Shown piece after piece: positions 5,823 to 61,953 of a DNA stretch of 64,000 nucleotides. The DNA comes from Eutreptiella sp. 'Long Island Sound 2002' (Eukaryota; Protista; Euglenida), in NCBI GenBank assembly GCA_964036045.1, contig OZ038379.1, positions 13,144,001 to 13,208,000 of the forward strand, written 5' to 3'. The translations under genes were made by a program, and so were the position numbers. How positions within the stretch are numbered: position 1 is the first letter of the stretch; each line of letters opens with the position of its first letter. The notes below the pieces were generated by a model. That model ran no database searches and was not told where the DNA came from. It saw only the letters and a list, made by a program, of their open reading frames with translations.

Positions 5823-5865
<43 letters not shown>

Positions 5866-6030: not shown

Positions 6031-6085
<55 letters not shown>

Positions 6086-6218
6086 ACCCCCGGCCAGACC
6101 CCCCCCACCCCCGGGAGGAACCCCCCTCCCCCCCAACTGCCCCTCCCCCCCCCGAGGTTTTGAAATTAGTTGGGGGGTGGGTCGCATCAGGACCGGTTGT
6201 AGTCGCCCCCCCCCCGTG
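4962..6218. mobile_element. 1257-bp non-autonomous TIR DNA transposon with 8-bp TSD
   Basis: TTTCAAAC at 4954-4961 and 6219-6226. Imperfect TIRs: CACGGGGGG...CCGGTCCT vs the reverse complement of the right end. Duplicate copy 2 has a single TTTCAAAC (13694-13701) and no element. Confidence 0.92.
5821..5865. repeat. (GCTT)n microsatellite inside the TIR element
   Basis: gctgcttgcttgcttgcttgctgcttgcttgcttgcttgcttgctgc. Confidence 0.9.
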
Positions 6219-18720: not shown

Positions 18721-20312
18721 ATGAGTAGGCGGGTAGAGAGAGAACGTGGACAGGAATATGCGAATCCGAATCAAGAAAAGGTTGCCATCCAAGCTGAGCT
18801 GCAAAGTACACAAGAGAAGCTTGAGGCCTCAGAGAAGGAGTGTGCACAGCTAAGGGCAGCGCATTATTAGACCATTAGACCATTAGAAGAGGTATGGAGG
18901 GAAAGGTTGGTAGCCTGTCGGCAGTAGGGGAAGGTTGTGCCCTCACAGCCCAGATTGCCTTGGAAGGGCGTAAAGTCTGAATTGGCTTGCAGGGGCATGT
19001 GTGCAGAGGCATCTGGTACCGTCAGTGCGAAGCTGGCGGTCTAGTCATCAAAACAGCGGTCAGGTCATCTCCACTTTGGCTTTCAAAGCGTTTGAGAATG
19101 CCGTCCAGTTGGGGTTGTCATTCCCTCAGTAGCTTCGACAACAGGTCCACCGTCTAGTTTAAGTCTGACGGTCCTTCGTAGCAGGGGGTGGCCACAGGCA
19201 CCAACACGTGTCGGGTTCCCTACTTCATACTAGCTCGGGAAGGCATGGTTGCACGGGATTTCCGGCCCTCTCCCAGTTGACTGGGACTGTAGTTGAGGGT
19301 ACTCCCGCCCCGCAGCTGCCACCACTCACTTTGCAATCCCGCTTGCTTGGTAGTCCCCAACACTGATGATAAGGTAGTGCTAGCCCAGGTCCATAAGCCA
19401 CGTGTCAGGGGGCCAGGTTTAATGGCGGAGGCAATACATGTGCATTGGTGATCTGAGGGTGTATTCGCTGTATGTAGTGTAGGAGGACGCATGGCATGGC
19501 GAAGGGCCTACTTCTCTCCCTACCAAAGTGTGTTGCCTTGCCGGGGGGGGGGGGGGCGGAAGGTGCCTAGTAATCATTCCTTCTTGCACGCCTAGCTTTA
19601 CTGACATTTATTTCTTGTGTCACAGGCTCCTTCACAAGGCCTCAAAGCCCGCAAGACAAGGGAGGGCTACATCTGGGTGGAGGTACCCATGCAAGACGTC
19701 ATTGCTGCACTACCTGATGCCACGAGGAACACCACTAACAGTGGCAGCGACGATGTTGGTGGTGGTTGCAGCACCGGCGATGTAGCCGGCAGTGCGGGTG
19801 GGGGTTGCAGTGTGAGCGAAACCGGTGGGGTTATGGCTGGTACGGCAGATGGTACTGCAGGTGGTACAGGAGGTGAGAGTGGCAGTGTGATGGGTAGCAA
19901 TGGTAGTGCAAGTGGCAATGGCAGTGTAAGCGGCAGCAGTGGCGATGTGGCTCGTATTGTAAGGGGCAATGGCAGTGCACGGGGCAGCACTGGCGACGTG
20001 GCTGGTAGCACGAGTGGGAGCGGTTACGGTAGCAGTAAAGGCAGTGTGAGCAGCATGAGCACCGATATGAAGGATATCATCACGACAGGCAAAAGTGGCG
20101 GTATTGTCGGCCCAAGTGTTGACATAAACAATACATATGCTATCCCGACAGTGAACAGCGTTCCGTATTGTGGCAAGTCTCCTGCCCGGCGGTATTCTGT
20201 AAGAAGGCCAAATGATCCCTACAATCCGTCTCGGCCGGCCTTTTACAATGACTGGTCAACACCAACCCTCATGGACGTGGATCAGTGTGACCCGAATGCT
20301 ATGGCACTCTAG
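18721..20312 (+). pseudogene. Divergent paralog 3 of the coiled-coil + Gly/Ser family; join(18721..18891,19626..20312) with an in-frame TAG at 18868-18870
   Basis: Exon 1 QAELQSTQEKLEASEKECAQLR aligns with DAQMQSMQVKINGLEKQITELK. Donor gag|gtatgg at 18891/18892, TACTGAC branch site and tttcttgtgtcacag| acceptor at 19625. Exon 2 reads APSQGLKARKTREGYIW...PSVDINNTY...PAFYN...MDVDQCDPNA. Confidence 0.6.
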
Positions 20313-41609: not shown

Positions 41610-44413
41610 CATAACCTTTGCCTTCGCAGCGGTTCCAACGTCGTGAGCAATCAATGTGGCTACATAACCGCTGTCTTCTGGAGGTCGCCAAATTGGGGAG
41701 CAACCAATACAGCTACATAACCATTTCCTTGTCGCGGCAACCGATGTGAGTGGAGTCAATTTGGGTAAATGACCCGTGCCGCCAAAGAGTCCCCAATGTG
41801 CCGAGCAATCGTTGTGGCAGCATGGCACCTGCCTTCTCAGGTTCCCTAACGTGGTGAGCAATCAATGTGGGTAAATCACCTTGCCATGTCAGAAACCCCA
41901 AAGCGGGGAAGAACCATTATGGCCACATAATCAACCGTGTTCACCATCGCGGCAATGTGGGCACAATACGAAGGGCCTATATGACCCTGCCTTCTCGGAG
42001 CCCAGAAAATCTGCAGTAATGCATGAGGCTACACAATTTTTGCCTATGCAAGATCCCCAAAGTGCGGAGACATATAAGTGCCTACATAATAAATACCTTT
42101 TGAGGATCCCCAAAATGTGGAGCAATGAATGAGGGTGCATGACCACTGCATTCTCACAATCACAACAATGCGAATGAATCAACTTGACCCCCTAACTGTT
42201 GAGATGTGAGGATCCCAAAAGAGGGGAGAAAGTAACATGCCTGCATAGTTCCTTTCTTCTTGGGGTCCCCGAATTGGAGAGCCGTCAATTTGGCAAAGTC
42301 AACTCACACTTCCCGGGTGCTCAACGTGGGGATCAATGTGGCCACCTGACTCCAACGTTCTCGAGGTCACCAATGTGGGGACGATCAACGTGGCTACATC
42401 ACCTCTGCCTTGCTGGCATCCTCGAAGTGGGGTGAAATTAATGTGGCCACATAACCTCTATGGCGTCAGGGTTTAGAAACCGGGTAGCAATCTAAGTGGC
42501 TGCAGCACAGGTGCTGCAGGGGAGTCCCAAAAGTGGGGAGCAATAAAAGTGGCTACATAACGCCTACTGCGGGGTAGTCCCATAAGTGGGGAGCATTCGA
42601 TGTCGCTACACAACCGTTGCCTTCTCAAGGTCTCCAAAAAAAGAGCAATCAAAACGGCTACAAAACCACGGCCTTCTCGCGGGCCCTAATGTGCGGCAAT
42701 CAATGTGGCAACATCATCCTTGCCTTCTCACTGTCCCCATTCAGTTCATTCATTGCAACGTGGTGAGCTACGTATTTGGCTACATAACACCCGTGTTCGT
42801 GGGGCACCCAAAGGGGTGAGCAATCAATGTGGCTACAGAAACGCTGCCTGCTCGAGGGTACAAATGATGGAGGAATCAAGACGGCTGCAAAACCATGGCC
42901 TGATTGGGGGCCCAAATGTGAGAGCAATCAATGTAGCTATATCACCCCTGCCTTCTTGCTGTCCAGAACATGGTGGGCAATGTCCCCAACAGGGTCAGCT
43001 CTCAATGTGGCTACATGAACCATGTCTTTGCGGGGTCCCCAACATGGTGAGCAATCATTGTGGCTCCATAAACGTTGTTCTCCGGGTCCCGAACTTGGTG
43101 CGCAATCCATGTGGCGACATAGCCGCTGCCTTTTCGAGGTCCCTGAAGGTGGCAGCAATCAATGCCGCTACAAACCACCGCCTTTTCAGGGGCTCAAATG
43201 TGGGAGCAATCAAGTTGGCTACATACCCTCTACCTTCGCAAAGTTACCTAACACAATGAGCAATCGATGTGGCTACATAACCCCCGCTTTCGTGGAGTCC
43301 CCATCGGGGAGCAACAAATATAGCTACATCACCCTCGCCTTCCTGAGGTGCCCAGACCGGGGAGCAACCAATATGTCCCCATTGCGGCGAGCGATCAATA
43401 CACCTACATAAACGCTGACTTCTCACAAGGCCCAATGTGAGAGCAATCAATTTGGCTACAAAACCCATGCCTTTTCGGGGTCCCCAACATGGTGGGCAAC
43501 CAATGTGGCTACAAAACCCATACCTTATAGAAGCCCCAACGTAGGGAGCAATAAGCGGGGCTCTACGGCTCCTAGCCTGGCGGGAACCCCAAAGTGCGGG
43601 GCAATCGGTGTGGAAACATTATGACTACCTTCTTGCGATCCGCAAATGTGTAGCAATTAAATTGGCTAGATAACAAACGCCTTCTTGGAGTCCGCACAAT
43701 GGGACACAATGAATGGACCTACCTAGCGGTTGCTTTCCCACGATCCCCATAGTGGGGAGTAAGCAACGTGGCTAGATAGTCTTTTCCTTGTTGGGCCCCC
43801 TATAGTGGGGACCAATGGACGTGCCTAAGTCAGCTCACCCTTCTCGGGGTCTCCAAAGGGGGGAGCACTAAATGTGGCTACATAACTCCTGTCTTTGCAA
43901 GGGCCCCAAAGAGTGGACAAATCAAACTCATGACGTAATGACCGCCTTCTTGCTATCCGCAAAGAGTAGAGCAATCAACATGGCAACACAATCAATGCCT
44001 CCTCGGGGTCACCAAAGCTAAAAGTAATGTATCTAGTCCCTTCTCGGTGTCACCAAAGTGTTGAGCAACCAATGCGGCTCCGAAATGATAGCTTTGCAAC
44101 TTCCCTAGAAGTGAGAGCTATCAATGTGCATTCCTAAATGTTGCCTTGTCGAGGTCCCCAAAGCAGGGAGCCATCAATGCGGCTACAGAAAAGCTGCCTT
44201 CTCGCGGCCCCAAATGTGAGAGCAATGACTATGGCTACATAACCCTTGGCTTCTCCGTGTTCCCAAGATGGTCAGCAATCAATGTCGCTACATTACCCAT
44301 GCCTTATTAGTGTCTCCTGAGCAATCGATGGGCCTACGTAAATCCCTTCTTTGTAGAGTCCTCAAACGGGTGTGCAATTAATGTGGCTAATAACCACTGC
44401 CGTCTCGGGGTCC
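41610..44413. repeat. Degenerate ~53-bp satellite array, right part
   Basis: The same gagcaatcaatgtggctacataac monomer continues and ends abruptly at 44413. Confidence 0.95.
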
Positions 44414-45292
44414 GAGTGTAACACAGCCAACACCAGTTCTACGCAATGCCACAAATCCCAATCTCCAATGAGGTGATTCAGCAGTGGTTGAGGACGTGTG
44501 GAACATCAGCAATCAGCAAATACACAAACTCATCACAACCTCAGTACGTGCAATGGCCATTGATGAAATGCTTAGGCAGTGGTTCAGGATTGTCTTGACA
44601 TCATGAACACAAACTGTCGATATCAGACTGACGTATGAAGCAACAACACATTCTAACCTCACATGTACAAACACGAAAAAATGCAAACACTGGACAAACC
44701 AAAAGAGCTGGCTAACCTAAATGGCACACGGAGTCAATTGTGCGTCTTTTACGCAACATAGCTAAGATTTGATTGCACCAACCTTTCACAAGAGAGAAAC
44801 AAACTCCTAGACAGCTACCATGCATCTGAAAGCCTTCACCACTCTTGGATGTCTTTTGTTTTGTCAGTGTGCCAGTCTGCTCTGTTAAAGCGAGATGTAT
44901 CAATGATGAAAACCAAAACAGACATGGTGTCACCCATGCAGCAGTGGTGCATGGCTGTGCAACTACACCATCAGGTTAGTCTGTCCTGCTTGGCTGGACC
45001 CTAGCACAGCAAACGTACTGAACCACAGTGAATGGGGGCTTGGAAGTATGGAATTGTGGCAGGAATGGTTTAACATCAAGCTTCAGCCACAAATTAAAAT
45101 CCCCATTGCACAATATTAGATCCAAATGTACAAATCAACAACCAAGTGTAACTCCTAACATCATGCCCCAAAAATACAAGCAAGAAAGACACTTGGATAC
45201 CCTGTTTTTGGATAAGAAGGTGCAATGTCTCAGTCCAACAGGGAACATAAGTAAAATCAATGGCACGTCATAGAGCTGGGTAAAATGTCATC
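44414..45292. repeat. Block A, duplicated at 48169-49557
   Basis: gagtgtaacacagccaacaccagttctacg...gagctgggtaaaatgtcatc. The second copy has extra segments at ~48365-48560 and ~48995-49310. Confidence 0.93.
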
Positions 45293-45294
45293 AT

Positions 45295-45516
45295 GTGCCT
45301 CAAACCGGGGCCGACAAGGAGAAAGCAAGGGTGGGCGGTGTATCGCCTCTCTTCGTCGCCAGCCAGAACGGCCATGCCGAAGTCGTGAAGTTTCTGGTGG
45401 ATGCGGGGGCCGACAAGGAGCAAGCGACGGAGGCGGGCTCATCCCCTTTGTTCATCGCCTGCCAGAATGGTCGCCTGGATGTCGTGATGTGTTTGGTGGA
45501 GAGTGGAGCCGGGTGA
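45295..45516 (+). pseudogene. Ankyrin-repeat fragment (two repeats)
   Basis: GADKEKARVGGVSPLFVASQNGHAEVVKFLVDAGADKEQATEAGSSPLFIACQNGRLDVVMCLVESGA. It starts abruptly after block A and is followed by a frameshift/stop. Confidence 0.85.
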
Positions 45517-46406
45517 TAAGGCCCACAGCACAATGGTACGGCTTTATGAGCGACAGGTGCTCAACTCGCCACCACGTATGTTAGCACTGGCTCTGGAAGG
45601 GAAGCCAGGAGCACTGACACTGGACAAGGACAACATGCAGGATGGGAATGTGCTGTCGCGTGCGAGCACTGCAGTCCTCATGCTGATATCCAGTACTTTA
45701 GCATCGATATGGAGATCACGAGGAGAAAATAAAATGTCTATGTACAGAGGCACATCAGCTGAGGTGATCCTATCAAAGATAAGAAAACCCCCGGAGCCAG
45801 AGTCTGTCCCCAACCCATGAGAAAGTGGCACTGGGGGGTCGGGCATTGTGACGCTCATGTGTGCAACTACCGCCATAGAAGTGGCGCTCGGATCTACAGC
45901 TTTGCATGTGGGTGGCCATGGACTGCTGGCTATCTGACGCACTCCGCGGCCCTTCCGTGGGCAATTTTCGCTGGACATCTGTGCAGCATGACCCCGGACC
46001 AGTCGCGGCTGAACTTCACCAAACGGCCAACAGAAGGGCAAAAGCGGGGAGGAAGCAGGGCAAAGAGGGGCACGAGGATAAGCGGGACAAGTGATGTCAC
46101 AGTTGGGACCACAGAAGAGCAAGAGGGATACAACTGGGGGGGCTGCAGTCCTGGTTTCTGGCCTGTGCCGTCCGGTTCATGAATGAGAACGACCCCAACG
46201 CACCGAAACCGTGGGTTTCATCACTTTGGGGTGCGTTTTGATGCGCAGAAAACGAGCCAAAAACGCTCCAATCGACCCTTTCGAAGGGATCATCAACACC
46301 GTGCGATATTTCAAACTCCACTCGTTCTGCCCCGTCTTTGTCGCTGTCAGAAGTCTGAAAATTGCAGGTTTTGGGGGGGCGGCTGGACACCATGCTCAAA
46401 GAGCGG

Positions 46407-47414
46407 TTAACACAGCCTTCGCCGTTTTGCTGGGGGCAGGGGCCGGGGGGGTGGGTGCCCGCACGGGCGTGTGGGCGGTTCACGAGGCAGAAAGCCAAGG
46501 GCCAGCAGCAGCACTTCTTTGGGGAGGGTGGCGATCAACCCACAGCGCCCGCAGCCTTCGCAGCCCCCGCACCGCGCGTAGAGGAGCATGGCCGTGCGCA
46601 CCACGTCCTGCACGGCCGGGGGGAAGAGCGTGTTCCCTTCGGGGTTCCAGACCACCGCATCCGCGACGAACCGCCGAGTGGCGGCAGACCCGAGCATGAC
46701 CGGCGTCACACTGCCGGCCTCCGTCAAAGGGGAGGCCCCGGAGCGCAGCAGTCGCTGGATCACCGGCCGGCAATCAGCCTCGCATGCGAAATGCAGCGGC
46801 CCCCAGCCCGCCACGGAGTGCAGCCACGCCGCTACGTCCGCGGCGGCTTCACTGCAAAGGTCTGGCAATAGAGCGGGCGACGGAGGGGGGCAGCGGCCGG
46901 CCTCGCCCACCAAATACTTCACGACGTCCAAATGGCCGTGCCTGCTCGCCATGGCCAGGGGGGCCGCCCCGTCCGCGTCCGCGGTCTCCTTGTTGGCCCC
47001 GCACGCCAGCAGGTACTTCACGACCCCCAGGCGGCCGTGGCAGCTCGCGATGTACAGCGGCGACGCCCCGTACTCGTCGGCGCCGTCTTTGTCGGCCCCG
47101 GACTCCACCAAATACTCGACGACGTTCAGGTGGCCGTTCTCGCTGGCGTAGAACAGGGGCGACACGCCCCCGCGCATGGCCTTCTCCTTGTCCGCCTCGG
47201 CCTCCACCAGGTATTTCACGACGTCAAGGTGGCCAAACGCGCTGGCGATGATCAAAGGCGACGCCCCATGGCAATCCGTGGCCTCCATATCTGCCCCGGA
47301 CCGCATTAAATACTTCACCACTTCCAGATGCCCAAACACGCTTGCGGTGACCAAAGGCGACGCACCGAACACCGTTGCTTTCTCTATATCCGCGCCACTC
47401 CTCCCATCGAACAT
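46407..47414 (-). CDS. Ankyrin-repeat protein (5 canonical + 1 divergent repeat) with a C-terminal F-box-like motif; probably a terminal exon or 5'-truncated gene
   Basis: Five G.SPL..AS..GHL.VV.YL repeats, then WNPEGNTLFPPAVQDVVRTAMLL...LPKEVLLLALGFL. The sequence is GC-rich and coding-like. The ATG at 47414 lies in block B, and the ankyrin sequence begins at ~47400. Confidence 0.9.
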   Translation of the reverse strand: MFDGRSGADIEKATVFGASPLVTASVFGHLEVVKYLMRSGADMEATDCHGASPLIIASAFGHLDVVKYLVEAEADKEKAMRGGVSPLFYASENGHLNVVEYLVESGADKDGADEYGASPLYIASCHGRLGVVKYLLACGANKETADADGAAPLAMASRHGHLDVVKYLVGEAGRCPPPSPALLPDLCSEAAADVAAWLHSVAGWGPLHFACEADCRPVIQRLLRSGASPLTEAGSVTPVMLGSAATRRFVADAVVWNPEGNTLFPPAVQDVVRTAMLLYARCGGCEGCGRCGLIATLPKEVLLLALGFLPREPPTRPCGHPPPRPLPPAKRRRLC

Positions 47415-47960
47415 AAATTTGCAACACCGGAACTAGAAATATGCAAAAAAGAAAAGGGGATGCACACTTAAATCGTCAAGATCAATCCACTGATCTCCAT
47501 ATCCACTGTACCACTGTTGTTGTTCTGTTCACATTGTCTCTCAAATGAACACAATGCCCTGTGAATCTCACGCTCAATGGGTCTACCAAAGTGAGTCACT
47601 CACGTTGGTAACATTATTGTTAGATAGACATGTCATCACAGCTCAGCTACCGAGGCCTTGCGGATCACAGCAGCGTAAAGCCATGGCATGATATCCACGT
47701 TGCTTATTGGGCAGATAGATTTACTAGCGTTGCATTTGTTCTTCAACCTGGATATGTCCATCACCACCCACATTCTATCTGCACATCTACCATATTGTAT
47801 CATTGAAATATAATCGCAGCCACCAGCTGTGCAGATACTTCAGCCAACCCTTTCACAGCCACATGCAGATCCATCTTCCATTCGCCTTTCAGTCCAACAG
47901 GGAACACAATTGAAATAATAGTTGGTCATGGAGCTGGGTAAGGTCTCATCATGGCGCTTA
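47401..47960. repeat. Block B, duplicated at 49558-50115
   Basis: ctcccatcgaacataaatttgcaacaccgg...gagctgggtaaggtctcatcatggcg, near-identical in both copies. Confidence 0.93.
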
Positions 47961-48168
47961 CATAACACAAACACCTGCATCTGAACACAAAAAGTGTCAC
48001 CAACAGCAAAGACGTATCAGATTGAGGACTGGAAGAATGGGTCACATCATTGCTCAGCAACACTACTCATTATTCGCCACCAAGAAATAGCACCTGCAAC
48101 ATCCCAAACATTGATCTTTCGGAACATGCCTCCGGGAGGGCACATCCACACCTTGTGGCTCAATGAAA

Positions 48169-50115
48169 GAGTGTAACACAGCCAACACCAGTTCTACGCA
48201 ATGCCACAAATCCCAATCTCCAATGAGGTGATTCAGCAGTGGTTGAGGACGTGTGGAACATCAGCAATCAGCAAATACACAAACTCATCACAACCTCAGT
48301 ACGTGCAATGGCCATTGATGAAATGCTTAGGCAGTGGTTCAGGATTGTCTTGACATCACGAACACAAATAGCATAAGTCCCCCTGACAGAAGCTACTTGG
48401 TGGCCAGTGGCCTTAGCCAAGGGCTTGTGGCATTCTCGAGAGTATCTCCACATTCCTTGTGTGGCCACCTAGAGATCCGTACACTTGACCCACCATTGGG
48501 GGCCAAGCTCACAGACAGAGACTCTGTGTTGGCAAATACAAAACATAAATGCACTGTACAAATCAGACTGACGTATGAAGCAACAACACATTCTAACCTC
48601 ACATGTACAAACACGAAAAAATGCAAACACTGGACAAACCAAAAGAGCTGGCTAACCTAAATGGCACACGGAGTCAATTGTGCGTCTTTTACGCAACATA
48701 GCTAAGATTGGATTGTACCAACCTTTCACAAGAGAGAGAAACAAACTGCTAGCCAGCTACCATGCATTGTGCATCTGAAAGCCTTCACCACTCTTGGATG
48801 TTTTTTGTTTTGTCAGTGTGCCAGTCTGCTCTGTTAAAGCGAGATGTATCAATGATGAAAACGAAAACAGACATGGTGTCACCCATGCAGCAGTGGTACA
48901 TGGCTGTCCAACTACATCATCAGGTCAGTCTGTCCTGCTTGGCTGGACCCTAGCACAGCAAACGTACTGAACCACAGTGAATGGGGGCTTGGAAGCATTC
49001 CCCTCACCAAACCAAGCAAGTCTATGGGGTGTTTATGAGTTACATTGCAACCATTGTGTGCATGTGCACAATGCAACAACACTATCTGCAATATACACAG
49101 ACAACATTGCATCCCATCAGTCAATATTCGTTTAAGCATGTATCGATCAGACAAATGCCTCAAAGCATCACATTTTCTTGGAACCCTTGGCCCACTGGTT
49201 TTTCTACACCCTACAGTGCACACTCAAAATCATCATCTATCCTCTACAGCAACACATACCCCCATCTGATGACACCCAAGCAACGACAACAAAGCAACAC
49301 ATGGCCATGATGCAGGAATTGTGGCAGGAATGGTTTAACATCAAGCTTCAGCCACAAATTAAAATCCCCATTGCACAATATTACATCCAAATGTACAAAT
49401 CAACAACCAAGTGTAACTCCTAACATCATGCCCTAAAAATACAAGCAAGAAAGACACTTGGATACCCTGTTTTTGGATAAGAAAGTGCAATGTCTCAGTC
49501 CAACAGGGAACATAAGTAAAATCAATGGCACGTCATAGAGCTGGGTAAAATGTCATCCTCCCATCGAACATAAATTTGCAACACCGGAACTAGAAATATG
49601 CAAAAAAGAAAAGGGGATGCACACTTAAATCGTCAAGATCAATCCACTAATCTCCATATCCACTGCACCACCGTTGTTGTTCTGTTCACATTGTCTCTCA
49701 AATGAACACAATGCCCTGTGAATCTCACGCTCAATGGGTCTACCAAAGTGAGTCACTCACGTTGGTAACATTATTGTTAGATAGACATGTCATCACAGCT
49801 CAGCTACCGAGGCCTTGCGGATCACAGCAGCGTAAAGCCATGGCATGATATCCACGTTGCTTATTGGGCAGATAGATTTACTAGTGTTGCATTTGTTCTT
49901 CAACCTGGATATGTCCATCACCACCCACATTCTATCTGCACATCTACCATATTGTATCATTGAAATATAATCGCAGCCACCAGCTGTGCAGATACTTTAG
50001 CCAACCCTTTCACAGCCACATGCAGATCCATCTTCCATTCGCCTTTCAGTCCAACAGGGAACACAATTGAAATCATAGTTGGTCATCGAGCTGGGTAAGG
50101 TCTCATCATGGCGAT
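48169..50115. repeat. Second copy of blocks A and B, joined directly (A' 48169-49557, B' 49558-50115)
   Basis: Junction tgtcatc|ctcccatcg lacks the 45293-47400 ankyrin-bearing interval and shows 2-bp TC microhomology. Confidence 0.93.
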
Positions 50116-51659
50116 TAGCGTTTGTTGAGGTCTTTTGCCCTGTGCTTGTGGTCTTTATTACAAGAGAATTTACGAAAACTTCTCTAGCAGAAATTGGAAC
50201 TCAAATCGTTTTTCAAACACTGTGCATACAAAATGGTTTTCGCTGCAAACAAAATTGAATATGTATCTAAACGCAATGAGCACCACATCTTTCTTTACCG
50301 TTGTCTCCGCTTTGTGCCAACTTTGTGCGTTTTGACACTTTTTGGGGGTTTTTTTACAACTCGTGCCCCAATGTGCAAAGATGTCACCACGTATGGGGGG
50401 GGGGGGGGACCAGAGCATGCTCTTTTGCGCACCAAAGGCTTTTGTGGTGCATCGGGGAAAGCAACAGCACGTGGCGTGAATTTGTATGAAGACATGGTAG
50501 CCGCCTGTTACAAAAAAAGGCAGCAAGCAACACAGGCAGTGTCCAAAACAGACGAAGATCTCAAACATGTTGTCAGTACAGCGTGTAGACCCAGGGTGTT
50601 CCAAATAGCCCTTTTCAAGGGCTTTCCGAATATATCCCATATAGAGAGAGCAATGGTCGGTTCCAATAGTCTGAATGCCCCTGCCATAGGCACTTTCAGC
50701 CATTAGTCCAATAGTGAGTGTCCTCTGCAAAGAGCTTCAATCCACCATCTGCTATGTACAGTGCATGTTCAATGTTGCACTCCATTTTATGGACCAAAGA
50801 CGGCACATGCCTATGTAGGACAGTGTCGCGTGGACCTGGTAGCAACACTAGGCTTTGAGGTCATCCTCGGCATCTCCCATATACCCACCCTCCCTCCGGG
50901 ACACTCACGCGGCACAAATGAGGCAACAAGGGCTGCAACCCCCTAAAACACACAAATTGGCACAATTCTGAACGAGGCCAAGAGAGATGCAATCAGCTTC
51001 AAAGGGCAACACTATGGCACCAACACATGCCCTTGAAAAGGAAAACAGCTTCAGCTTCACTGTAAGGCTAGGAAGTGGTTTTCAAGTACTACCAATTACA
51101 GATACCTTTCCAGCGTCCTTGATTGAAAATCAGAACCTGTTTGGTTGGCGATGAAAAATCATCAATCGCTTTTATATTATCGCATAAAGTCAGGTATTGG
51201 CAATCAAACTTGAAAATACATGGAACCTTTACTATTGCAAAGCTTGCAAAGGTGGAAGTTCGGAGTTGTGAATATCAATAATAGAAACCTGTTTATGCAA
51301 CTGGAGCCCTAAGGTCGCCCGGGCACTCCATCCCTGTCTCTACGCCACGATCGATGTCTCCGACCAGAGGGGGAGGGTGCAACTCACAGACGCCCACGGC
51401 GAGGGGCTCCAGGCGAGACGCCCACGAGCAGGGGCGTCTGACTCACACCCAGCGTGCCACTGGCGTCCACCGGGTCAGACGCCATCGAAGGAGCTGGACA
51501 CATTGAGTCGAACACAGCACGCGATCGGTTCTTACTTCGTGGTGGGTGTGCCAGGGCCGGACACTACTGAGTGGCACACTGGTCCGGGGCTGATTATCAG
51601 CGGAAACACAGCTCCCCCGCCTGCGCACACTCGCGTCCTGGTACACACACGTCAACATA

Positions 51660-52026
51660 CCCGTGGTTAGAAGCGTGCATGTATGTTTGTGCACGCTTAC
51701 TTTCCATGGCTTTGCACGCTTACGCACCCTTACACCCCAACACTCCGCACGCTTGTGTACGCTTGGGCTCGGGGACACAGAGGTGGACCTCTTGTATAGT
51801 CATGCACAGGCCCTCTGCAGAAAAAATATTGGTGCTGGTGGAATTTTTGTTTAAGAGCACTGTGTGCCGAAAAGGCACTTAAGGGGCTTTCAGGTCAAAA
51901 AAAAAAGTGCACGCTTGCGCACGCTTGGACGGGGAGATGGCGCACACTTACGCACACTTACCACCCAACACTGCGCACGCTTGTGCACGCTTAACGCTGG
52001 TCTGTGCGCTCGCTTCTAACCACGGG
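51660..52026. mobile_element. ~370-bp MITE with perfect 16-17-bp TIRs and internal GCACGCTT repeats
   Basis: (A)CCCGTGGTTAGAAGCG at 51659/51660 and CGCTTCTAACCACGGG(T) ending at 52026/52027. Flanks are TA and TC, so the TSD is ambiguous. Confidence 0.8.
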
Positions 52027-52174
52027 TCTGCACATCACTCGCCTACTCGCGGCCGTCCTCTTCCATACGTCAGTGCAGTCCGTCACGGTACACCCGACGG
52101 CCCAGTGGCATCGCTGCGATCGTGAGCCCAGGCGCCCCCGGCCCGTCCCCCGTCCTCTTTGGGCCTCCGGGGCC

Positions 52175-53092
52175 TCATAACTTCGCAGACGGCCGCTGCG
52201 CCACGAGGACACTCGTCATGGCTGGCAGCCCAGGGCAGCGCCGCACGCCCACGAACCCCGCGGCCTCCAGCATCGCCTGCAGGTCCTCTGCGTACAGCAT
52301 CTGCACCTCCGCGTTGACGCTCACGTGCATGAACGTCCACAGGGCTGTGTACGTGCCCGCGCCCCCGGCGGCATCGGGGCCCGCGCTGATGAAATCGTGG
52401 AGGACCAGCTGCCCGCCGGGGCCCAGCACGCGGAACGCCTCCCTGAAGAGCGCCGGAAGCGCGCCGAAGGGCACGCTGACGCAGAGGTACGACATCAGCA
52501 CCACGTCGAAGCGGCCGTGCGGGACAGCCCACGGGCAGTCCAGGGCAGAGCCTGGTATGAAGTGCAGGCGACGCGCCACATCCGGCCGCGTCTGGGCCAG
52601 CTCCGCGCGCAGCTCCTCCCCCGTCGCGACCACCGTCGGAAAGTCGAGCACCGTGCAGTCCAAGTGCGGGGCGCGCGCGCACAGCTCAGCGGACACGGGG
52701 CCGCTGCCGCCCCCGACATCCAGCACGCGGCGCGCCCGCACCACGTCGAAGTGGGCGGCGAGCATGCGCCCCACGCCCTTGGAGCCGTTGTGCTGTGCCC
52801 GGGAGTAGAGCCGAGCCTCCGAGGCGTCCTGGAACCACTGCGTGTAGTCGGCGGTCGCGCCCGCGCCCTCCCGCATCACCGCCGCTACCCGCTGCATGCG
52901 CAGGTACAGCTGCTTGTCGAGCTGGTACTTGTAGTAGTCCCCATAGTACGCCCGCGCCGTCGACACCATGAGCTGCTCCACCGATGGGGCGTTCTGGTAC
53001 GTTGTGTCTTTGGCAGTGGGTCCCCTAACGGCCCTCAGTACGTGCAGTGACTCCAGGGATTTGATAAGCACCATGAGACGGGTGGGCGGGAC
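52175..53092 (-). CDS. DSYB: DSYB-like methylthiohydroxybutyrate (MTHB) S-methyltransferase, exon 2 (catalytic class I SAM domain)
   Basis: Acceptor cctgcacag| at 53093 after a poly-C tract. Translation contains YYGDYYKYQLDKQLY, YTQWFQDASEARLYSRAQHNGS, LDVGGGSG, DFPTV, FDVVLMSY, HDF, ALWTFMHVSVNAE and PAMT, each matching DsyB/DSYB motifs as I recall them. The O-methyltransferase fold is certain; the DSYB orthology is from recall. Confidence 0.8.
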   Translation of the reverse strand, partial: VPPTRLMVLIKSLESLHVLRAVRGPTAKDTTYQNAPSVEQLMVSTARAYYGDYYKYQLDKQLYLRMQRVAAVMREGAGATADYTQWFQDASEARLYSRAQHNGSKGVGRMLAAHFDVVRARRVLDVGGGSGPVSAELCARAPHLDCTVLDFPTVVATGEELRAELAQTRPDVARRLHFIPGSALDCPWAVPHGRFDVVLMSYLCVSVPFGALPALFREAFRVLGPGGQLVLHDFISAGPDAAGGAGTYTALWTFMHVSVNAEVQMLYAEDLQAMLEAAGFVGVRRCPGLPAMTSVLVAQRPSAKL

Positions 53093-53162
53093 CTGTGCAG
53101 GTTGGGGTGGGGGAGGGGGGGGGGGGGGAGCACAGACGGGGCACACAAGGGGCGCACGAATG

Positions 53163-53830
53163 GGCCATGAGGCAACGGAAACTGGGCTCGCATACGCCCC
53201 CGTGTCACAGGCGCATGGTCATAACCACATTGTTCAGTGTTTTTCTCGCTGCACTGCAGCGCAGACCAGTTCTGTACCACACCAGGTGGGTGCTGACTGT
53301 GCTTTGGCTTTGGTCCTCTGGACACTGAGGTCAGCTCGCACCCACCACCCTCCCACAGTGCCGGTTAGTCTCTAACCCTTGCCCTGCAGGTCGTGCCCCT
53401 GTCATGCACTTGCTCTCTGGCACGTGAGGACGTGTCGTACCCGAACTTCGGGGGCGCTAAGGCGCCTTTGGTGGCGCAAAGGCGTCTCAACATTTCAACA
53501 AAAGTTCTGGCTGCCGGACACTTCAACTGGTCATTGCTGTACTGTGTGTACTGTGTGTGGCGCATACCTTTTCAGCACCACACCATGCGTGCACAGGCCG
53601 CCCACATTTTCATGTTTACTCGCTTCCAATACGCTCACATGGGCTGCATTCTCGCAGCCCTTGTCATGCTTCGGCTGTTCAACACGACGTGTTGCGCCTG
53701 TGCTCCAGGGGCGCAATGGCACCCCGTTGTTTCACCATTAAACTGCTCTGTGCTGCCATGGCGTCCCATACACCCTGGTCAGCTCGAACCCACCACCCTC
53801 CCTTTGCGCTGGTTAGCCCCCGACTCTTGC
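53163..53830 (-). mobile_element. ~700-bp dispersed SINE-like repeat, copy B, in the DSYB intron
   Basis: Colinear with 39526-40232. The motif ggtcagctcg(c/a)acccaccacc...ggttag occurs twice internally (~53330 and ~53780). Confidence 0.75.
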
Positions 53831-53974
53831 TCTGTGGGTCTCTCTCCCACTCTCTCCCTCTCTCTCTCTCCTACCCTCTCTCCTGCCCTCTCTCTCGCTC
53901 TCCTTCTCTCCGTTCCTTTTCCATTGCGCCCCACTCTCTCTCTCTCTCTCCTCTCCGTTCCTCTCCCACTGCGT

Positions 53975-54067
<93 letters not shown>
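53830..54067. repeat. (CT)n microsatellite: pure tract ~53980-54067, degenerate CT-rich sequence to its left
   Basis: Direct reading of the sequence. Confidence 0.97.
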
Positions 54068-54071
<4 letters not shown>

Positions 54072-54175
54072 AAAAGGGGTTTTCGGGACGTTCAGTGGAT
54101 CTCTATCCCCCCCGGGGTTCGAACCCTCCTCTACAGGACAGAAGAGGTGCGGTATATCCACTGGGCTATGACGAG
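54068..54175 (-). mobile_element. tRNA-derived SINE-like / Pol III unit with a (GA)n tail
   Basis: Minus strand: A-box TAGCCCAGTGG (54168-54158), B-box GGTTCGAACCC (54125-54115), CCTCT/AGAGG stem between them, TTTT at 54075-54072, then (GA)n. The acceptor and D stems do not pair, so it is not an intact tRNA. Confidence 0.7.
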
Positions 54176-55456
54176 TTGTTATCTGCATCACTTGCTCCAT
54201 TCTGTCCTACTCCCCCCTGCGTGTCATCCCCTGTCATGCATATCTCCTTTCGCATGGGGGTGTGCTCAGCAGCGTGTAGAGGAAATGCACAAATGGGGGG
54301 GGCGGGGCTCCGAAGTAAACTTTGCACCGACACTCCCGCCCTCTTCTGTGACCCCCGTCCGGTCGAGGGGGTTGTTGGCCGCAACTCATATCTTGCGAAC
54401 CTACCATACCTTTGCGAGGGTTCGAGGGGTTCGTTGGGCAGGCGGTGACTCAATCACGGGTCCAAAAGCGGGCATTCTTACTGATTTAGACGGTGCGGAA
54501 AATGTCTGTTTTAGTGGCATAAAATGCGGGTCCCGAAGGTGAAGAAATTTCCGCAATCGTCCCCGGGCGAACCGCGTCCGCCGCTGTAGTGGGGAGGAGG
54601 GGCTTGGGTCGTGCCTGTGAAGAGCTGTTGCTTCTGCTCCCATTTTCTGTTTGTTTTTTTGGTTCTGATTGGGCTCTCGGTCCCAATTGAGCTCTCAAGC
54701 GACCGCCCGGGTCAAAGAGTGGCGCGTGTCATACAAACGAGGGTCCCACACGGGTGAGTGTGGTCTGGACTACCGCCCAAATCCATCCCGACCGCATCAG
54801 CGTTGTCATTTCTGATGAGGGAAGCACGGTGGTCGCTGCTACAAAGCATGTGTTGCAACATGTATGGAGGAACGCCTGGCGGTTCTTATGTTGGAGTCAC
54901 AAGCTAGTTAGCATTGGTGACATCCTCCCGAAGCACAACGTGTTCTCGATGATCAATCTTCTTTACCGGTCATTGTCTCTGGTTCGAGTACCGATGCAGG
55001 AGGGTGCTCTGCACCACCGAAGAGGGGTGATGGTACGATTTGCACGCAGGGGGCAACAAGTGCACAGGGAGCCAAGGGGCATTCAGGGGGTACATAGGAA
55101 TACGGTGTGGGGGGGAGGAGGGCAACAGCACCTGCGGCGGGGATTGATGGCATGGGCCTGGGAGAGACGCAGTTGGCACACGCCCCCCCCCCCCCGTGCG
55201 GCGCAGACATGGCCGAAGGCAGGGGAATGGACGGTCCTGCGGGAATCCTGTGCTTGCGTGTGACCCACAGGCAGGTGGTCCTTGAGGGGGGTGCAGCACC
55301 ATTCGGCGAACATCGTATCAAAACAGACAGAAAACGGGAGCAGCAGTGAACAGAAGGTATCCGTCGGTTCAAATTTCACGGTCTGGGAGTCATTGGACGG
55401 GAAACCTGTCACGAGGAGGGGGGGGGGGGGGCATGAGGGTCCATCAGGGGGCACAC

Positions 55457-55639
55457 TTGCGTCTCCTGGGCCAGCGCCGTCACAGTCGCGCCGGCGCCGA
55501 GTCGCGAGATGGCGTCAAACAGGCCAATGTCCAGTGCGCAGAACAGAGCCTTGGATGCCGCAAAGCCATACGCCATGGAGTTGACGTCCACGTCATCAGG
55601 GACGGGGGCAGTCGAGTGGTCAGCGGATGCGGTCTGCAT
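55457..55639 (-). CDS. DSYB: DSYB-like methyltransferase, exon 1 (N-terminal dimerisation region, 61 aa from ATG 55639)
   Basis: MQTASADHSTAPVPDDVDVNSMAYGFAASKALFCALDIGLFDAISRLGAG...LAQETQ|, donor caa|gtgtgc at 55456. A phase-0 join to VPPTRL gives a continuous 366-aa protein. Confidence 0.8.
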
Positions 55640-55686
55640 GGCCTTTCTCAGCAGCACAGTTTGGTTTAGGCAAAACCCAGAGGGCT

Positions 55687-55710
55687 CTGCGCAGCGCCAA
55701 AAAAAAAAAC
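55687..55710 (-). promoter_or_regulatory. Candidate 3' splice acceptor (cis-intron or spliced-leader trans-splice site) upstream of the DSYB ATG
   Basis: Minus strand ttttttttttggcgctgcgcAG, with AG at 55688-55687, 47 nt before the ATG. Confidence 0.45.
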
Positions 55711-58700
55711 AACTAAATATGCGGGGTCAAGCAGGGACGTCCCCACCATTTGCACTTAATGAGGCTCAACACAATGCCTTATTCAACAGTCGACGCAGAC
55801 TCCAACACTATAGACTCGGCCTATAGCCACTGACACTATAGACACTATAGACACGGCCTCCACAGTCAGCACGAGCGATTCAGAGGAATAATCATGGCCC
55901 CGGTGTCCAGCCCCCCCACACACTTTTGTTGTTCCAATGCAGTTTTTAGCTAGATTTGCCTGGTTGGCAAGAGCACCCAAAAGAAGAGGGTGCCAAACGC
56001 ATTGGACACATCATGGGGCTCAATGGAAGCCCCCCCCCCCCCCGTTTTACTCCAATACATATGTCTCAAGACAGTGCTCAGCGCGACGTGGCGATCATTT
56101 GGAGGTACATTGAGGCACATAAACCGGGGTGTTTGGCTCTGTCAGTTTGATGTTGCAGGTGCCATTGCCACAAGTGGAAGGCATATGAAAAACGATGGTT
56201 TCAAAACCAGCACTGGGAATAGAGGGCATTAAGGGTCATACAGGGGTCACAGGAGTAGCACAAACCGCACTAGAAAAAATTTTAAGGCAGGGGTATTCCC
56301 TCCCCTCCCTGCATCCCCTCCCTCTTTGCAAATCAGGTGAATTGCAGAATTGGTTGACCCGAAAATTTTGCAGGGGTGTGCATGTCTTGGCGCAGGTGTG
56401 CGTTTTCTGCTGTGATCCAGCACAATACAGTGCAACATGATGCTACGGAACACAGCGAAGGTGTCGTTACTGGGGATTCAGTGTGAACGGAGAGGGAATG
56501 CCTTTTTTCCGAAATAGATCCTGCAGCCCTGCAGCCGGGTGCTGACGAAGCCACCAGTGCACCCCTACCAAGAGTCAGCAGATCCGGAGGCCAACAAAGC
56601 CGTGAGCGAGTCGGCGGACAGTTTTCAAGGTTTTTCAAGGTCTTCTAGAAAGTCCCGTACCGCACCATGGGATACGCTGAAGCTTCGAAGTGTAGCAGAA
56701 AAAACCTGCTCTTTTTCCTTTGACTTGTACCAATTCCCTACAATGTAGTGTTGATCCTTCACGTTGAGTTCCACTCAAAAATGCGCGGCTTTCCAAGTGG
56801 AGCAGTACCCTGCCCCAAATTCTTGGCCTTTTCCGACTTTGCCGACTCAGTGCCGACTGGTTGGCCCCCCGACTCAGGGGGAGGGAGACCAACTAGCCTC
56901 AAAATACCTTTGGGAGTTCCAACCGCCATCCGTTAAGCCCCAACCGCATGGGGCCCGAGGCTGCTGCTAACAAAAAACAGCCAAAAATCATAGCGTTCTC
57001 AACAACCACCACTGCTGATGTCCAACTTTCATTCAGGTATTCAGCAGCGCCAGTCCCTCGAACCAAAATTCTTGAACAAAGGTTGTTTCCCTGTCCCATG
57101 ACAATGACATTGGTATCTCCCTCTGTGGGCTCCCGCCATTGGAACCCTGGGGCAAAGGTACATGTGCTTGCTTCCATTCTTATCCAGCCCTGTTTACCAC
57201 GGGAGGAATAATCTGAGGGGGGGTTTTGGGGAGGGCCAAAATTAGGGGGGCGGGAATTTGGTACTGCTGCTTAGAAATGAAGGAAAAGTTAGTGTAAGGC
57301 CCCTTGCTGTTGCTTCTTGGTGGATGATTTACCGACTTGCACCATCTTGAGGACCAGGGAACACAGTGTCATTTGACACCGCGTCTCACCTCCATGTAGC
57401 GCATCCACACTGCATGTAGCACGCAGAAACCCCCCCCTGCAGCCCATGTCCAGTGCACACATTGTGGCGCGTGGCATCCTGAAACTTGAAGGAAATATTT
57501 GGTACGAGGCAGGGCTTTCAAATTTGTCCACATCAGTTTTGTCCCTATCTAAAGTTGCCTCCCGTGGTACCCCCTGTGTCTCGTGCGGTTGTAGAGTCGC
57601 CTACATGCCGCGAACAGCCTCATATGGTGCCCGTTCCATTTCCTGGTATTAACGTTGTGTCAGGCGCCCTTTCCCTATCTGTTTTCTGCAAACGGCCGCC
57701 CTCATCGCAAGCTACAAATCTGCCGACCCTGCGAAGCCATGTGATCCGTCGTCAGGCTTTTTCTTCAAGGGAGAGTAACCCAAAGGCCGATTTCAGCAGT
57801 TCCACAGGTGCGGATATCCAAGTGTGACAGGGAGGCCACGGCCCCCTGACCCTATGCTTTAAGGGCCTTCAGAGAAACTAATACACCCATGCACAAGCAT
57901 GTCGTAGACGAGGTGGGGGTGGGGTCCGGAACCCAAAAAATTGTTCGCCAAAAGTGCCCCATCAAAAAATGTTCACCAAAAATGGCTGCATTAAAATCTG
58001 GGCCCAGGTGGGCTCAGGGGAAGGGGTCCCCCCGTACACCACCAACTCCACGCAGCATCCCAAATGCAACCGCGGCACAGCAACAACACAGTAATTGGCA
58101 ACCCATTGACACACATCCTGGCGCCGCGTCCAATGCATACAACGCCCCTTGTCCACCAGGCCTGGCCATTGTAAGCTACACGCGGGGCTCAGGATCCCCG
58201 ACCGGGTCAGGACACGCCGTCAGGCCGTGTGCTGTGGCCTGCAATATAATGCCCTTCCGCCCCGGGGTCATGCATCCAACACGCGGCCGGGCAGTTGGCG
58301 GACCGACCCGCAGTGCCAGTGTCGCAGGGACCCATCGTGGCTTCGACGGGCTCTAATGTGGGGTAGACCGGTGGTCTGCAAGTTCTCTCAAATTGTGCAA
58401 AAAATAAGCCGAGTGTCGATGCGCGATCGCACCCCCCGAGGAAAATGCAGGCCGCCGGCCCGCACCTCCCGCGACTCGGATGCCTCTTGGGAGGGTGCTC
58501 GATATGCGAATAACCTATCACGAAAATCGCCCAACTCGCGAAAATCGCTAAACATCCGCGAAAAAATCGCTAATGATCGCTGCGTTGCGCAGGTGCTGGA
58601 CTGGGCCCGGATCCGGGCCCCAGCAGCTGGACGGCGCTCGCCCCTCAAGGGGGGTCCACCGGCGGCGCACGGCCATGGCCACGGGGGCTAACTGGAGGCA

Positions 58701-58929: not shown

Positions 58930-59157
58930 CTACAGATATGCGATGGTCCGCGAGGGCTGCTCGACGAGGAACGTGTTGGTGGCGGGGGCGGCGTAGGTCT
59001 CGGGGGCGGTCACGCGGTGGTACCCGGGGTAGGCGGGGGAGCTGTGCACGATGGGCTCATGGTGGGTGGGCCCGTGGTGGGCGGCGGGGGGGCCAGGCAG
59101 GCGGTGCCCGCTGCTCTTGTCGATGTACTCCACCGAGACGACGGTGCCCTTTCCGAC
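58930..59157 (-). CDS. Pro/His/Tyr-rich repeat protein, last exon
   Basis: Acceptor poly-C...catcgcag| at 59158. Reads VGKGTVVSVEYIDKSSGHRLPGPP...IAYL*, repeating the VVSVEYID.S.G.R..GPP motif of the previous exon. Confidence 0.8.
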   Translation of the reverse strand, partial: VGKGTVVSVEYIDKSSGHRLPGPPAAHHGPTHHEPIVHSSPAYPGYHRVTAPETYAAPATNTFLVEQPSRTIAYL

Positions 59158-60488
59158 CTGCGATGGTGCGGGGGGGGGGGGGGGGTCTCCCCTGACAGGG
59201 CACAGCAGGGGGGTGGGGGGGGGGGGGGGGGTGACGCGGTCATGAAGTTTGAGCGATGCATCACAGTGGGAGGGGGAGTTTTGCCAACAGTCCCTCACCC
59301 GCCCATCGTTGGAACCGGTCCCATCTGTGGAACCCTTGGGGGGGGGGGGGGGGGGTGCTACCCATAGGCGGGGGGTTGCCATAAAGGCGGAGTAAGTGTG
59401 CCAGTTGGCACTTTCGGGTGGACACACTGGTTGGGGTTTTTGTAGGGGAGAGGGGGGGGGGGGGAAGGGGGTTCAGGGGGTTGCCAGGCAGGCGAAAGAA
59501 GTACGCCGGTTGGTGTTTCCAGATGAGCTCAGTTGGTCAAGTTCTGGGGAGGGACATGTGCACATTCTTTGTCCCCAGACAGTGAGGAACCGTATTTTCC
59601 CGCCCGGTATGCCCCCCCAACACCCGTGGTTTCAGCCACTATGCGGCATGGTTCTCAGGCCGGCACGGAGGTCTCAATAGCATGTGGGGTGAGCCCCCCC
59701 CCCCCCCCCCGGACCGCCTTCGCTGGGCCGCGAGTCCCCCCTCCCCCTGGGTGGGTCCCTTGCTGGGCCAATCAGGTGAGCATGCATACTCAACTCGCCC
59801 CCTTTCCGGTCTCTTCGCAACTGCTCAAAGTCTATTGGGCACCCACCGGCTCCAAGGTCTGGCAGGGGAGGCGTTCCAAAGGACATGTCATGGGCTGAGA
59901 ATTTTGTCACCACATTTTCTCCATCACCTTGGCACTCTACCCCTTTCCAACCCCCGGTGTCCAGTGCCACGTCTCGGGTACGACCTGTTGTACACCCTCG
60001 CCAACAAAACAGCACAGCCCCTCCCCCGAACGCCTGCCATAGACCCACACCGCTGACTTCAAGTCCCACTGCTCACGGTGCTGCTTGTTTCCTGTGGCCT
60101 CTGCCTTCCACATGCGGCCTGCTGTTATCACGCGGTGCCCCACCAGCCGTTGCGGAACCCCAACCTGCGGGGAAGCGCAGTGCGTGCGCAGTGCAAACCT
60201 GGGGCTTGCGGGGCAATCCCGGGCACCCATGTGTTTGGGGAGGCCTGATCCAAGAGAAGTGCTACCAATCCGTCACCGCTTGGCCCTTTGCACGCCCACG
60301 CTCTGACGCCACACCGTTTGTTTGCCCGTGCTCCGAAATACCAACAACTGAGTGGCACGCAACGTGCATCAGCCCGGCCTTAGCCTGATTCAAGGTACAC
60401 TGCCTTGCCTAGCTTCAGCCCAACCCCTGGACTAAAATCTCAAGTGGGCACCCTGTCCGGAACCGCTCCCTGATCCCTCGCCGCCGAC

Positions 60489-61109
60489 CTGCTGGCCAAC
60501 ATGTGGGTCAGGGCCCCCTGACCCGGGAGGGCCTGCCATCCGCATCCCGGTCGATGAGTCAATGTACTCCACGCTGACCACCTCCTTGCCGTGGTAGTGG
60601 GAGGGCTCTCCGTGGGGCACAGAGGGGCCGCTGGTGTAGTGGCCGGGGCCATGGTATGGGCGGCCGCTGTAGGTGGTGACGGGGGCGGGGGCGGGGGCGT
60701 GATGGGCGTAGGTGGTGACGGGGGCGGGGGCGGGGGCGTGATGGGCGTAGGTGGTGATGGGCGCGGGCGCGGCATAGGAGCGGGGGCGGGCCACCCCGAC
60801 GAGCTGCCCGAAGTGCTGCCCGTCGATCACGCCGTCCGCCGCGTCCAACGCGTAGGCCTCTTCCTGGGACCGGGCGAGGGCGGGACCGGCCCCGTAGTGT
60901 GGGGCAGGCGTGTGGTAGACGGCGTGTGGGGCAGGGGGGGCGTAGACGGCGTGTGGGGCAGGGGCAGGGGCGGCGTAGACGGTGTGTGGGGGGGGAGGGG
61001 CAGTCGTGGCAGTGCGCTGGCCGGCCAACTCAGGGGCCACCAGGATGGGCTTGCCCATGTAGGTCCCCTTCGGGCCGGCGTCCATCGCGTCCAGCTTCTT
61101 TGCGTCCGC
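60489..61109 (-). CDS. Pro/His/Tyr-rich 'LDAADGVIDG' repeat protein, internal exon (upstream exons not located)
   Basis: Acceptor ...cccacgcgcag| at 61110 and donor cag|gtcggc at 60488; 621 nt, phase 0. Contains KLDAMDAGPKGTYMG and ALDAADGVIDGQHFG, 39-nt APAPAPVTTYAHH repeats, and EVVSVEYIDSSTGMRMAGPP. Confidence 0.8.
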
Positions 61110-61953
61110 CTGCGCGTGGGCACGGGGCGTAGGCCAGGGGTGCACGGAAAAGGGGGAGACAGTGGCTGTCGGCCGTTGGAAGAGCCCCCGGGAGGCAAAT
61201 CCTACGCCCCAGCAGTTACAAACCGGTTGGACGCACCCCGTATACCATTGCAAAGTTGTGATGGTCTGAGGTAACCATCAAGACAACGGCATTGCGCTTA
61301 GGCTTTCAAAGGCATGACTCGGGGTGTGGAGGGTTCCATGAAGGCTGGTTAGTTGGTTGCCATCTGGTACAACCGGTGCCCAGTTTCATCGGGCTCAGGC
61401 CAGGATTAGGGCTACGGCTGGAGCTGGGGCTGGGCTTGGGCTTGCGCTAGGGCATATCAGAACCATCAAGGTGGGTCTGTGCCAACAGGCATAGCGACGA
61501 CTTGAGTGCATGCAGATGGACCTACACTGGGCCTGCGCTTGAAAAGGGGGAGGGTGGCCTTTGTGGTAGCGGTCAGCTCTGCCAACCCCTTCTTCCGCTT
61601 GCAACGGCCCCGGTGTGCAAGAACGCTGGTGGAGTTTCAACACAATTTGCGGCCACCCCCCGATCAATCACACACACCCTGCAGGTACACATCTATAAAA
61701 CACAAACAAGTGTGTTAAACTGGAATTACCGGCAAATCTACCCCACCTTTTACCGTTTGTTTTATCCCCCCCTCAGCCTCAGCTCTCAGCCTTTAACCCC
61801 CAATGGTGTAGGGAATGCATGTGGGCGCCGTATGGGTTAGAGCTATGAGTTTGTGTGACCTGCTTGTTGGTCGTGGTCGGTTTGGAGGGAGTAGGGGTTG
61901 GGGGGGGTAACAAAGGCTAGGAGGGGCCAGATATAATATCGGGGCAGCATATC

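Follow-up and report, generated by a model that had tools for sequence, protein, structure and literature searches.

We analysed a 64,000-nucleotide stretch of contig OZ038379.1 (positions 13,144,001 to 13,208,000, forward strand; hereafter the window), which carries on its minus strand a two-exon gene of the DSYB type, starting with an ATG at 55639. DSYB and its bacterial counterpart DsyB are methyltransferases of the pathway to dimethylsulfoniopropionate (DMSP), which ranks among the major organosulfur compounds of the sea and is the precursor of the climate-active gas dimethyl sulfide. Corals are among the carriers of DSYB. Here we describe the gene, its expression, its relatives and its host, and weigh whether its product could be an enzyme of DMSP synthesis.

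Gene structure and expression

Contigs of four public sequencing runs were mapped to positions 51700-56100 of the window: X1 and X2 (both from one organism, guessed to be RNA), X4 (an estuary metatranscriptome) and X10 (DNA-like). The gene model has the following parts, listed in the direction of transcription.

55640..55713, minus strand: 5' untranslated region of at least 70-74 nt; RNA contigs extend to 55709 (X1, X2) and 55713 (X4)
55639-55457, minus strand: coding sequence of exon 1, 61 codons, N-terminal dimerisation helices with the motif DVDVNSMAYGF
55456-53093, minus strand: conventional intron of 2364 nt, GT..AG, phase 0
53092-52175, minus strand: coding sequence of exon 2, 305 codons and the stop codon (52177-52175), remaining N-domain and Rossmann SAM-methyltransferase domain (SAM, S-adenosylmethionine)
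51954..52174, minus strand: 3' untranslated region of at least 221 nt, on the same 1393-nt RNA contig as the splice junction

The spliced coding sequence of 1101 nt is translated into 366 amino acids and its sole stop codon is the terminal one. With a slash marking the splice site, the donor reads CAA/GTGTGC and the acceptor CCTGCACAG/GTC, where CCTGCACAG lies directly before 53092. Joining the exons gave an uninterrupted alignment with the homologues. The 5' untranslated stretch 55640-55713 contains no ATG, and upstream of the ATG at 55639 no further in-frame ATG was found before an in-frame stop codon. An AG at 55714-55713 is a possible trans-splice acceptor; the RNA contigs end 1-3 letters beyond the genomic match at the 5' end of the mRNA, and a spliced leader was not visible there. 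The initial annotation, made from the sequence alone, had proposed a phase-0 GT-AG join of two exons giving a 366-residue protein, and this was borne out by the gene model and by RNA contigs with the exact junction. Its end coordinate, 55686, falls in the 5' untranslated region and not in the coding sequence. The GC-rich coding that it had pointed out was also seen, as the GC content at third codon positions is 0.85 in the DSYB gene and 0.81 in the neighbouring ankyrin-repeat gene.

A junction skipping exactly 2364 nt was carried by contigs in X1, X2 and X4, read as CT..AC on the plus strand and thus as GT..AG on the minus strand. The longest RNA contig, with a length of 1393 nt, covers 51954-53090 and 55455-55709 with zero mismatches. 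In the same three runs the unique intron sequence 54346-55374 had a depth of zero. In X10 this sequence was covered approx. 8-fold, the splice junction was absent, and the exon depth of 5-9 matched that of the unique flanks. We concluded that the gene is single-copy, transcribed and spliced as proposed, since the junction is present and the intron depth is zero in the RNA runs and the exon depth equals that of unique sequence. A second assembly (ENA ERZ25074135, contig ctg9357) was 99.98% identical to the window over the 33.6 kb compared. Sequence of the window was furthermore found in four estuary metatranscriptomes (X4-X7), and the spliced mRNA in X4 was 100% identical; the host species therefore occurs in an estuary and the gene is expressed there.

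Family membership, active site and predicted fold

Exon 1 alone matched the Pfam family Dimerisation (PF08100, E 2.5e-7) and aligned with the N-termini of DsyB/DSYB homologues, and exon 2 matched Methyltransf_2 (PF00891) and Methyltransf_23. No NCBIfam model was passed by the protein. In a phmmer search of all PDB sequences with exon 2, DsyB of Nisaea denitrificans (7WDQ/7WDW) was found at an E-value of 1e-44 (156 bits), and the next methyltransferase after DsyB was DnrK, at 5e-10 (43 bits). The translation contains the motifs DVDVNSMAYGF, YGDYYKYQ, QHNGS, FDVVLMSYLCVSVP, ALWTFMHVSVNA and GGGSGPVS, among them every one of the eukaryote-type DSYB motifs that had been quoted in the initial annotation.

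Mutagenesis of DsyB has identified residues whose exchange cripples the enzyme: Tyr97, Gln101, Tyr129, Tyr142, Gln146 and His291, which bind 4-methylthio-2-hydroxybutyrate (MTHB), and Ser150, Gly173, Asp196, Asp223, Ala224 and Ser239, which bind SAM (Li et al. 2022, PMC10989797). In an alignment of 69 rows, all six MTHB residues are kept in the window protein, as Y114, Q118, Y144, Y157, Q161 and H317 in the numbering of the spliced protein. Five of the six SAM residues (Ser150, Gly173, Asp196, Ala224 and Ser239) are kept as well, while Asp223 is replaced by Ser243. The Tyr, Gln, Ser and His binding residues that appeared present in the initial annotation were thereby confirmed. A Ser at the position of Asp223 also occurs in both diplonemid rows, in 5 of 17 rows of the algal clade and in a whole group of fusion proteins, so that this position is not diagnostic. 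Likewise, of the positions that had been singled out as divergent and possibly affecting activity, GGGSG proved to be normal for eukaryotic DSYBs; the exchange at Asp223 is the only one that affects a listed SAM residue, and it is widespread among family members. Gln146, His291, Ser150 and Ala224 are missing from the distant outgroup, and a bacterial side clade ('bact_B') has lost Tyr142 and His291.

An AlphaFold model of exon 2 only was predicted with a mean local distance difference test score (pLDDT) of 93.4 and a predicted template modelling score (pTM) of 0.90. Its top fold match in the PDB was DsyB 7WDQ (template modelling score 0.85, root-mean-square deviation 2.5 Å), ahead of RedM, acetylserotonin O-methyltransferase (ASMT) and plant O-methyltransferases. 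The two proteins have the two-domain architecture in common and are approx. 33% identical over approx. 300 columns of the Foldseek structural alignment. Unlike the Nisaea enzyme, the window protein is encoded by a eukaryotic, nuclear, intron-containing gene, has Ser in place of Asp223, carries short insertions near exon 2 residues 25-30 and 230-240, and falls in the eukaryotic and not the bacterial clade. As judged from sequence and model, the protein is a member of the DsyB/DSYB family, as had been proposed initially; sequence similarity, the residues of the active site, the modelled fold and the maximum-likelihood tree all support this.

Phylogenetic position

To collect relatives, 1.84 billion cluster representatives were searched exhaustively with HMMER, and a second, word-indexed search was made. 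The careful tree was calculated in IQ-TREE under LG+C20+F+G4 with posterior mean site frequencies (PMSF) from 69 rows. Its named eukaryotic anchors were Diplonema papillatum and Sulcionema specki (diplonemids), Bolivina argentea and Nonionella stella (labelled as foraminifera), Prorocentrum, Polarella, Alexandrium and Togula (dinoflagellates), Prymnesium parvum (haptophyte) and Diaphanoeca grandis (choanoflagellate); the bacterial ones were Alloyangia pacifica and a Sneathiellaceae metagenome-assembled genome. The ratified DsyB/DSYB sequences themselves and the inactive homologue of Streptomyces varsoviensis were not among the rows.

The DsyB/DSYB-like ingroup was split from the far rows with a support of 100/99. 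The window protein was placed inside the eukaryotic DSYB clade (100/95). Its sister group is formed by the foraminifer-labelled rows together with the metagenomic row P0089 (100/98). This window subclade is in turn sister to all the other eukaryotes of the clade, namely the algae, the diplonemids and a group of fusion proteins (98/89). Species with ratified DSYB (Prymnesium, dinoflagellates) fall among those other eukaryotes, and no ratified enzyme lies inside the window subclade. When the foraminiferal rows were removed, the window protein became the earliest branch of the eukaryotic clade, with an SH-like approximate likelihood ratio test (SH-aLRT) value of 99, in a quick tree only.

Haptophytes, dinoflagellates and some diatoms are the sources of the algal DSYBs, which form 'Eukaryote Clade I' (Curson et al. 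2018, as cited in PMC12614181). They fall in the same clade as the window protein and have the motifs D-V/I-D..S/N.AYGF, YGDY, QHNGS and DVVLMSY..SVP in common with it. The window protein is however only 35-39% identical to them and diverges earlier than diplonemids and algae do from each other. The algal proteins also carry Arg/Ala-rich N-terminal organelle presequences of 45-67 residues, whereas the window protein has none.

The best named match in the word-indexed search was KAJ9468405.1 of Diplonema papillatum, which is annotated as a naphthoate O-methyltransferase and 40% identical. Diplonemids, like euglenids, belong to the Euglenozoa, and the homologues of D. papillatum and Sulcionema specki resemble the window protein in their short N-terminus as well as in the Ser at Asp223. 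The diplonemid homologues and the window protein nevertheless did not group as one clade: forcing them together cost 35 log-likelihood units and was rejected by the approximately unbiased (AU) test with a p-value of 0.007, a test in which the group was named after the tree had been seen and long branches are involved. Vertical inheritance within the Euglenozoa, in a clade with the diplonemids, was on this test rejected.

The sister rows, Bolivina argentea P192582, Nonionella stella P081116 and P0089, keep all six MTHB residues. Those of Bolivina and Nonionella have short N-termini, and P0089 has a presequence-like N-terminus of 48 residues. They differ from the window protein in being only 30-35% identical and in having Asn-Val where it has Ser-Ala at positions 223-224, and their source organism is known by label only.

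DSYB has recently been extended to heterotrophs as 'Eukaryote Clade II', with the stramenopile Incisomonas (MAST-3), Picozoa and choanoflagellates (PMC12614181). These proteins are likewise DSYBs from beyond the phytoplankton. In our tree the Diaphanoeca rows P0082 and P0085 grouped with the DsyB of Alloyangia and Sneathiellaceae, which matches that description, and the window protein did not; therefore it does not belong to 'Eukaryote Clade II', an assignment that we ruled out as it sits in the other eukaryotic clade.

[quoted passage not shown]

Host and history of the gene

On contig ctg9357 of the second assembly a 22-nt match to the Euglena spliced leader, CTTTCTGAGTGTCTATTTTTTT, was found on the minus strand 14.86 kb before the start of the window, with 0.00 such matches expected by chance. 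The spliced leader of Euglena gracilis is ACTTTCTGAGTGTCTATTTTTTTTCG (PMC6242988). No copy of the spliced leader was found inside the window when up to 3 mismatches were allowed. Because this relic lies on the same contig of an assembly that is nearly identical to the window, a euglenid host is supported by the sequence, in line with the euglenid-type genome suspected initially. An open reading frame (ORF) of 532 codons lies directly 3' of the relic (L004 95-1800, approx. 14.9-16.6 kb before the window start), for which no Pfam hit was obtained.

The DSYB genes of Diplonema and Polarella are intronless, and the gene of Prymnesium parvum has four introns, none of them at the position of the window intron. 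A shared ancient intron was therefore rejected among these inspected homologues. Since two of the genes lack introns and the third has them elsewhere, the window intron is lineage-specific among the homologues inspected, which fits lineage-specific gain; intron gain had been suggested initially.

The gene is an early-diverging long branch of the eukaryotic clade. It probably came from another eukaryote or was kept in only some lineages. The initial annotation had also considered endosymbiotic transfer. This found no support, because nothing ties the gene to the donor lineage of the euglenid plastid (green-algal sequences were not specifically sampled). The gene also lies outside the algal DSYBs.

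Predicted function and alternative explanations

The window protein is predicted to be a DSYB-family SAM-dependent methyltransferase of a euglenid which catalyses the S-methylation of MTHB leading to DMSP. We give this reading a probability of roughly 65%. It is well motivated by the residues, the fold and the clade. The enzyme would form a homodimer via its N-terminal helices, partly encoded by exon 1, as in Nisaea DsyB. SAM would be bound in the Rossmann domain and MTHB in a pocket of Tyr114, Gln118, Tyr144, Tyr157, Gln161 and His317. The methyl group would then pass, through proximity and desolvation, to the sulfur of the thioether, which would yield 4-dimethylsulfonio-2-hydroxybutyrate (DMSHB). 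On the transamination route that leads from methionine to DMSP, this is the committed step. Only 22 residues, mostly acidic, precede the AYGF motif, and there is no presequence. As this N-terminus lacks a targeting presequence, the enzyme is probably cytosolic.

Other methyltransferases of MTHB or methionine (DSYE, DsyGD, TpMMT and MmtN) carry out the same or an analogous step of DMSP synthesis and are described as distinct from DsyB/DSYB (PMC11306096). In the metabolome of Diplonema, gonyol and a methylsulfoniopropionate were reported (PMC8611851), and these sulfonium metabolites fit an active DSYB in another euglenozoan.

Several observations weigh against MTHB methylation and DMSP synthesis in this host. 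The subclade of the window protein and the foraminifer-labelled rows contains no assayed enzyme, and Asp223 is replaced. Neither search returned a protein more than 42% identical, the gene's own product aside, and the protein collections searched contained no orthologue from another euglenid and no transcriptome-derived copy of the window protein. The end branch of the window protein is long (1.0-1.5 changes per site), so that its place in the clade is surer than the identity of its exact sister. Finally, no report of DMSP in euglenids was found in the searchable literature.

The strongest alternative, which we consider unlikely though a serious competitor, is that this DSYB-family enzyme has a shifted substrate or role, acting on another thioether or hydroxy acid or making a different sulfonium compound, in a host without DMSP. 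A long early branch without an assayed member would suit such a shift, as would the Ser at Asp223, the differences at several positions near conserved motifs and the searchable literature, in which euglenids are not known as DMSP producers. The loss of Tyr142 and His291 in the neighbouring 'bact_B' clade further indicates that the family diversifies. Yet in the window protein all six residues with mutagenesis-backed roles in MTHB turnover are intact, and the exchange at Asp223 is found in both diplonemid rows and in 5 of the 17 rows of the algal clade.

Far less probable is a rhizarian host that inherited the gene vertically beside the foraminiferal sequences, or, conversely, that the 'foraminiferal' sequences are euglenozoan contaminants of those transcriptomes. 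The placement of the Bolivina and Nonionella rows as sister group (100/98) speaks for one or the other, and both of these rows presumably come from transcriptomes of field-collected cells. Against a rhizarian host stands the 22-nt match, on the same contig, to the spliced leader of Euglena gracilis, of which 0.00 are expected by chance. An artefact, whether contamination from a bacterium or an alga, a mis-assembly or a dead pseudogene, was effectively refuted: long ORFs do arise easily in DNA of 70% GC, and several overlapping ones lie here on both strands, but the frame is intact across a splice junction seen in RNA, the exons have the depth of unique genomic sequence, high-copy repeats of the host itself lie within the intron, two assemblies agree and the homology reaches an E-value of 1e-44.

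In the searchable literature we found no paper that joins DSYB with euglenids or diplonemids, or in a relevant way DMSP with Eutreptiella or euglenophytes. This agrees with the initial annotation, in which DMSP synthesis was not known to have been described in euglenids. In Supplementary Table 3 of PMC11306096 the two Eutreptiella transcriptomes are entered solely as 'Undetermined', an entry from which we draw no conclusion. We concluded that the gene is a DSYB-family member new to euglenids; the family itself is known and this is not a new kind of system.

Content of the intron and surroundings of the gene

The intron is rich in repeats of the host itself, two of which were delimited.

53839..54067, inside the intron: (TC)n microsatellite, period 2, 115 copies (Tandem Repeats Finder)
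53170..53460, inside the intron: very high-copy dispersed repeat, summed k-mer depth approx. 70,000-200,000 in X10 compared with 5-9 for the exons

Copies of the dispersed repeat 53170-53460 were also present in the RNA runs. A tRNA-like piece (…TAGCCCAGTGGATA…GGTTCGAACCC…) adjoins the (TC)n array at 54090-54185 on the minus strand, and may be a tRNA-derived short interspersed element (SINE). Neither Rfam nor ARAGORN called any RNA gene in the window or the intron, the tRNA-like piece included.

Apart from the DSYB gene, just two genes of the window are recognisable, one an ankyrin-repeat ORF and the other a proline-rich repeat gene, and there is no conserved marker gene. Of these, the ankyrin-repeat ORF (46410-47414, minus strand, single-exon, 335 amino acids) is closest to the DSYB gene, with which it shares the strand. 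Beside it, at 44400-50120, segmental repeats were observed, with 47399-47960 resembling 49556-50117 (98.6%) and 44613-45046 resembling 48553-48995 (95%). Two proline-rich, GC-rich ORFs on the minus strand (58933-59472 and 60435-61277) have a common 'VVSVEYID.S.G.R..GPP' block and repeats of the APAPVTTYAHH type; they had no match in Pfam and could represent exons, or else paralogues, of a single repeat protein. A unit of approx. 9 kb is repeated in tandem with 95-98% identity over window positions 1-13900 and L003 positions 8800-20460, and an ORF of 153 amino acids was called three times within it.

Implications

Estimates of DMSP producers rest largely on surveys of DSYB/DsyB genes. An expressed euglenid DSYB with an intact active site would widen the set of candidate producers, and the sequence hints that euglenids are able to make DMSP. 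It would also offer a cultivable model for testing a cytosolic DSYB. Together with the diplonemid and foraminiferal homologues, the gene would indicate that deep-branching DSYB lineages escape the gene surveys of today. More tentatively, and with somewhat less than even confidence, we propose that DMSP is made in the cytosol of a euglenid, which may be a Euglena of fresh or brackish water, via a third, deep-branching eukaryotic DSYB lineage that this euglenid shares with benthic foraminifera. If this is true, two unrecognised protist groups would join the DMSP producers, and the shared lineage would point to transfer of a key gene from eukaryote to eukaryote.

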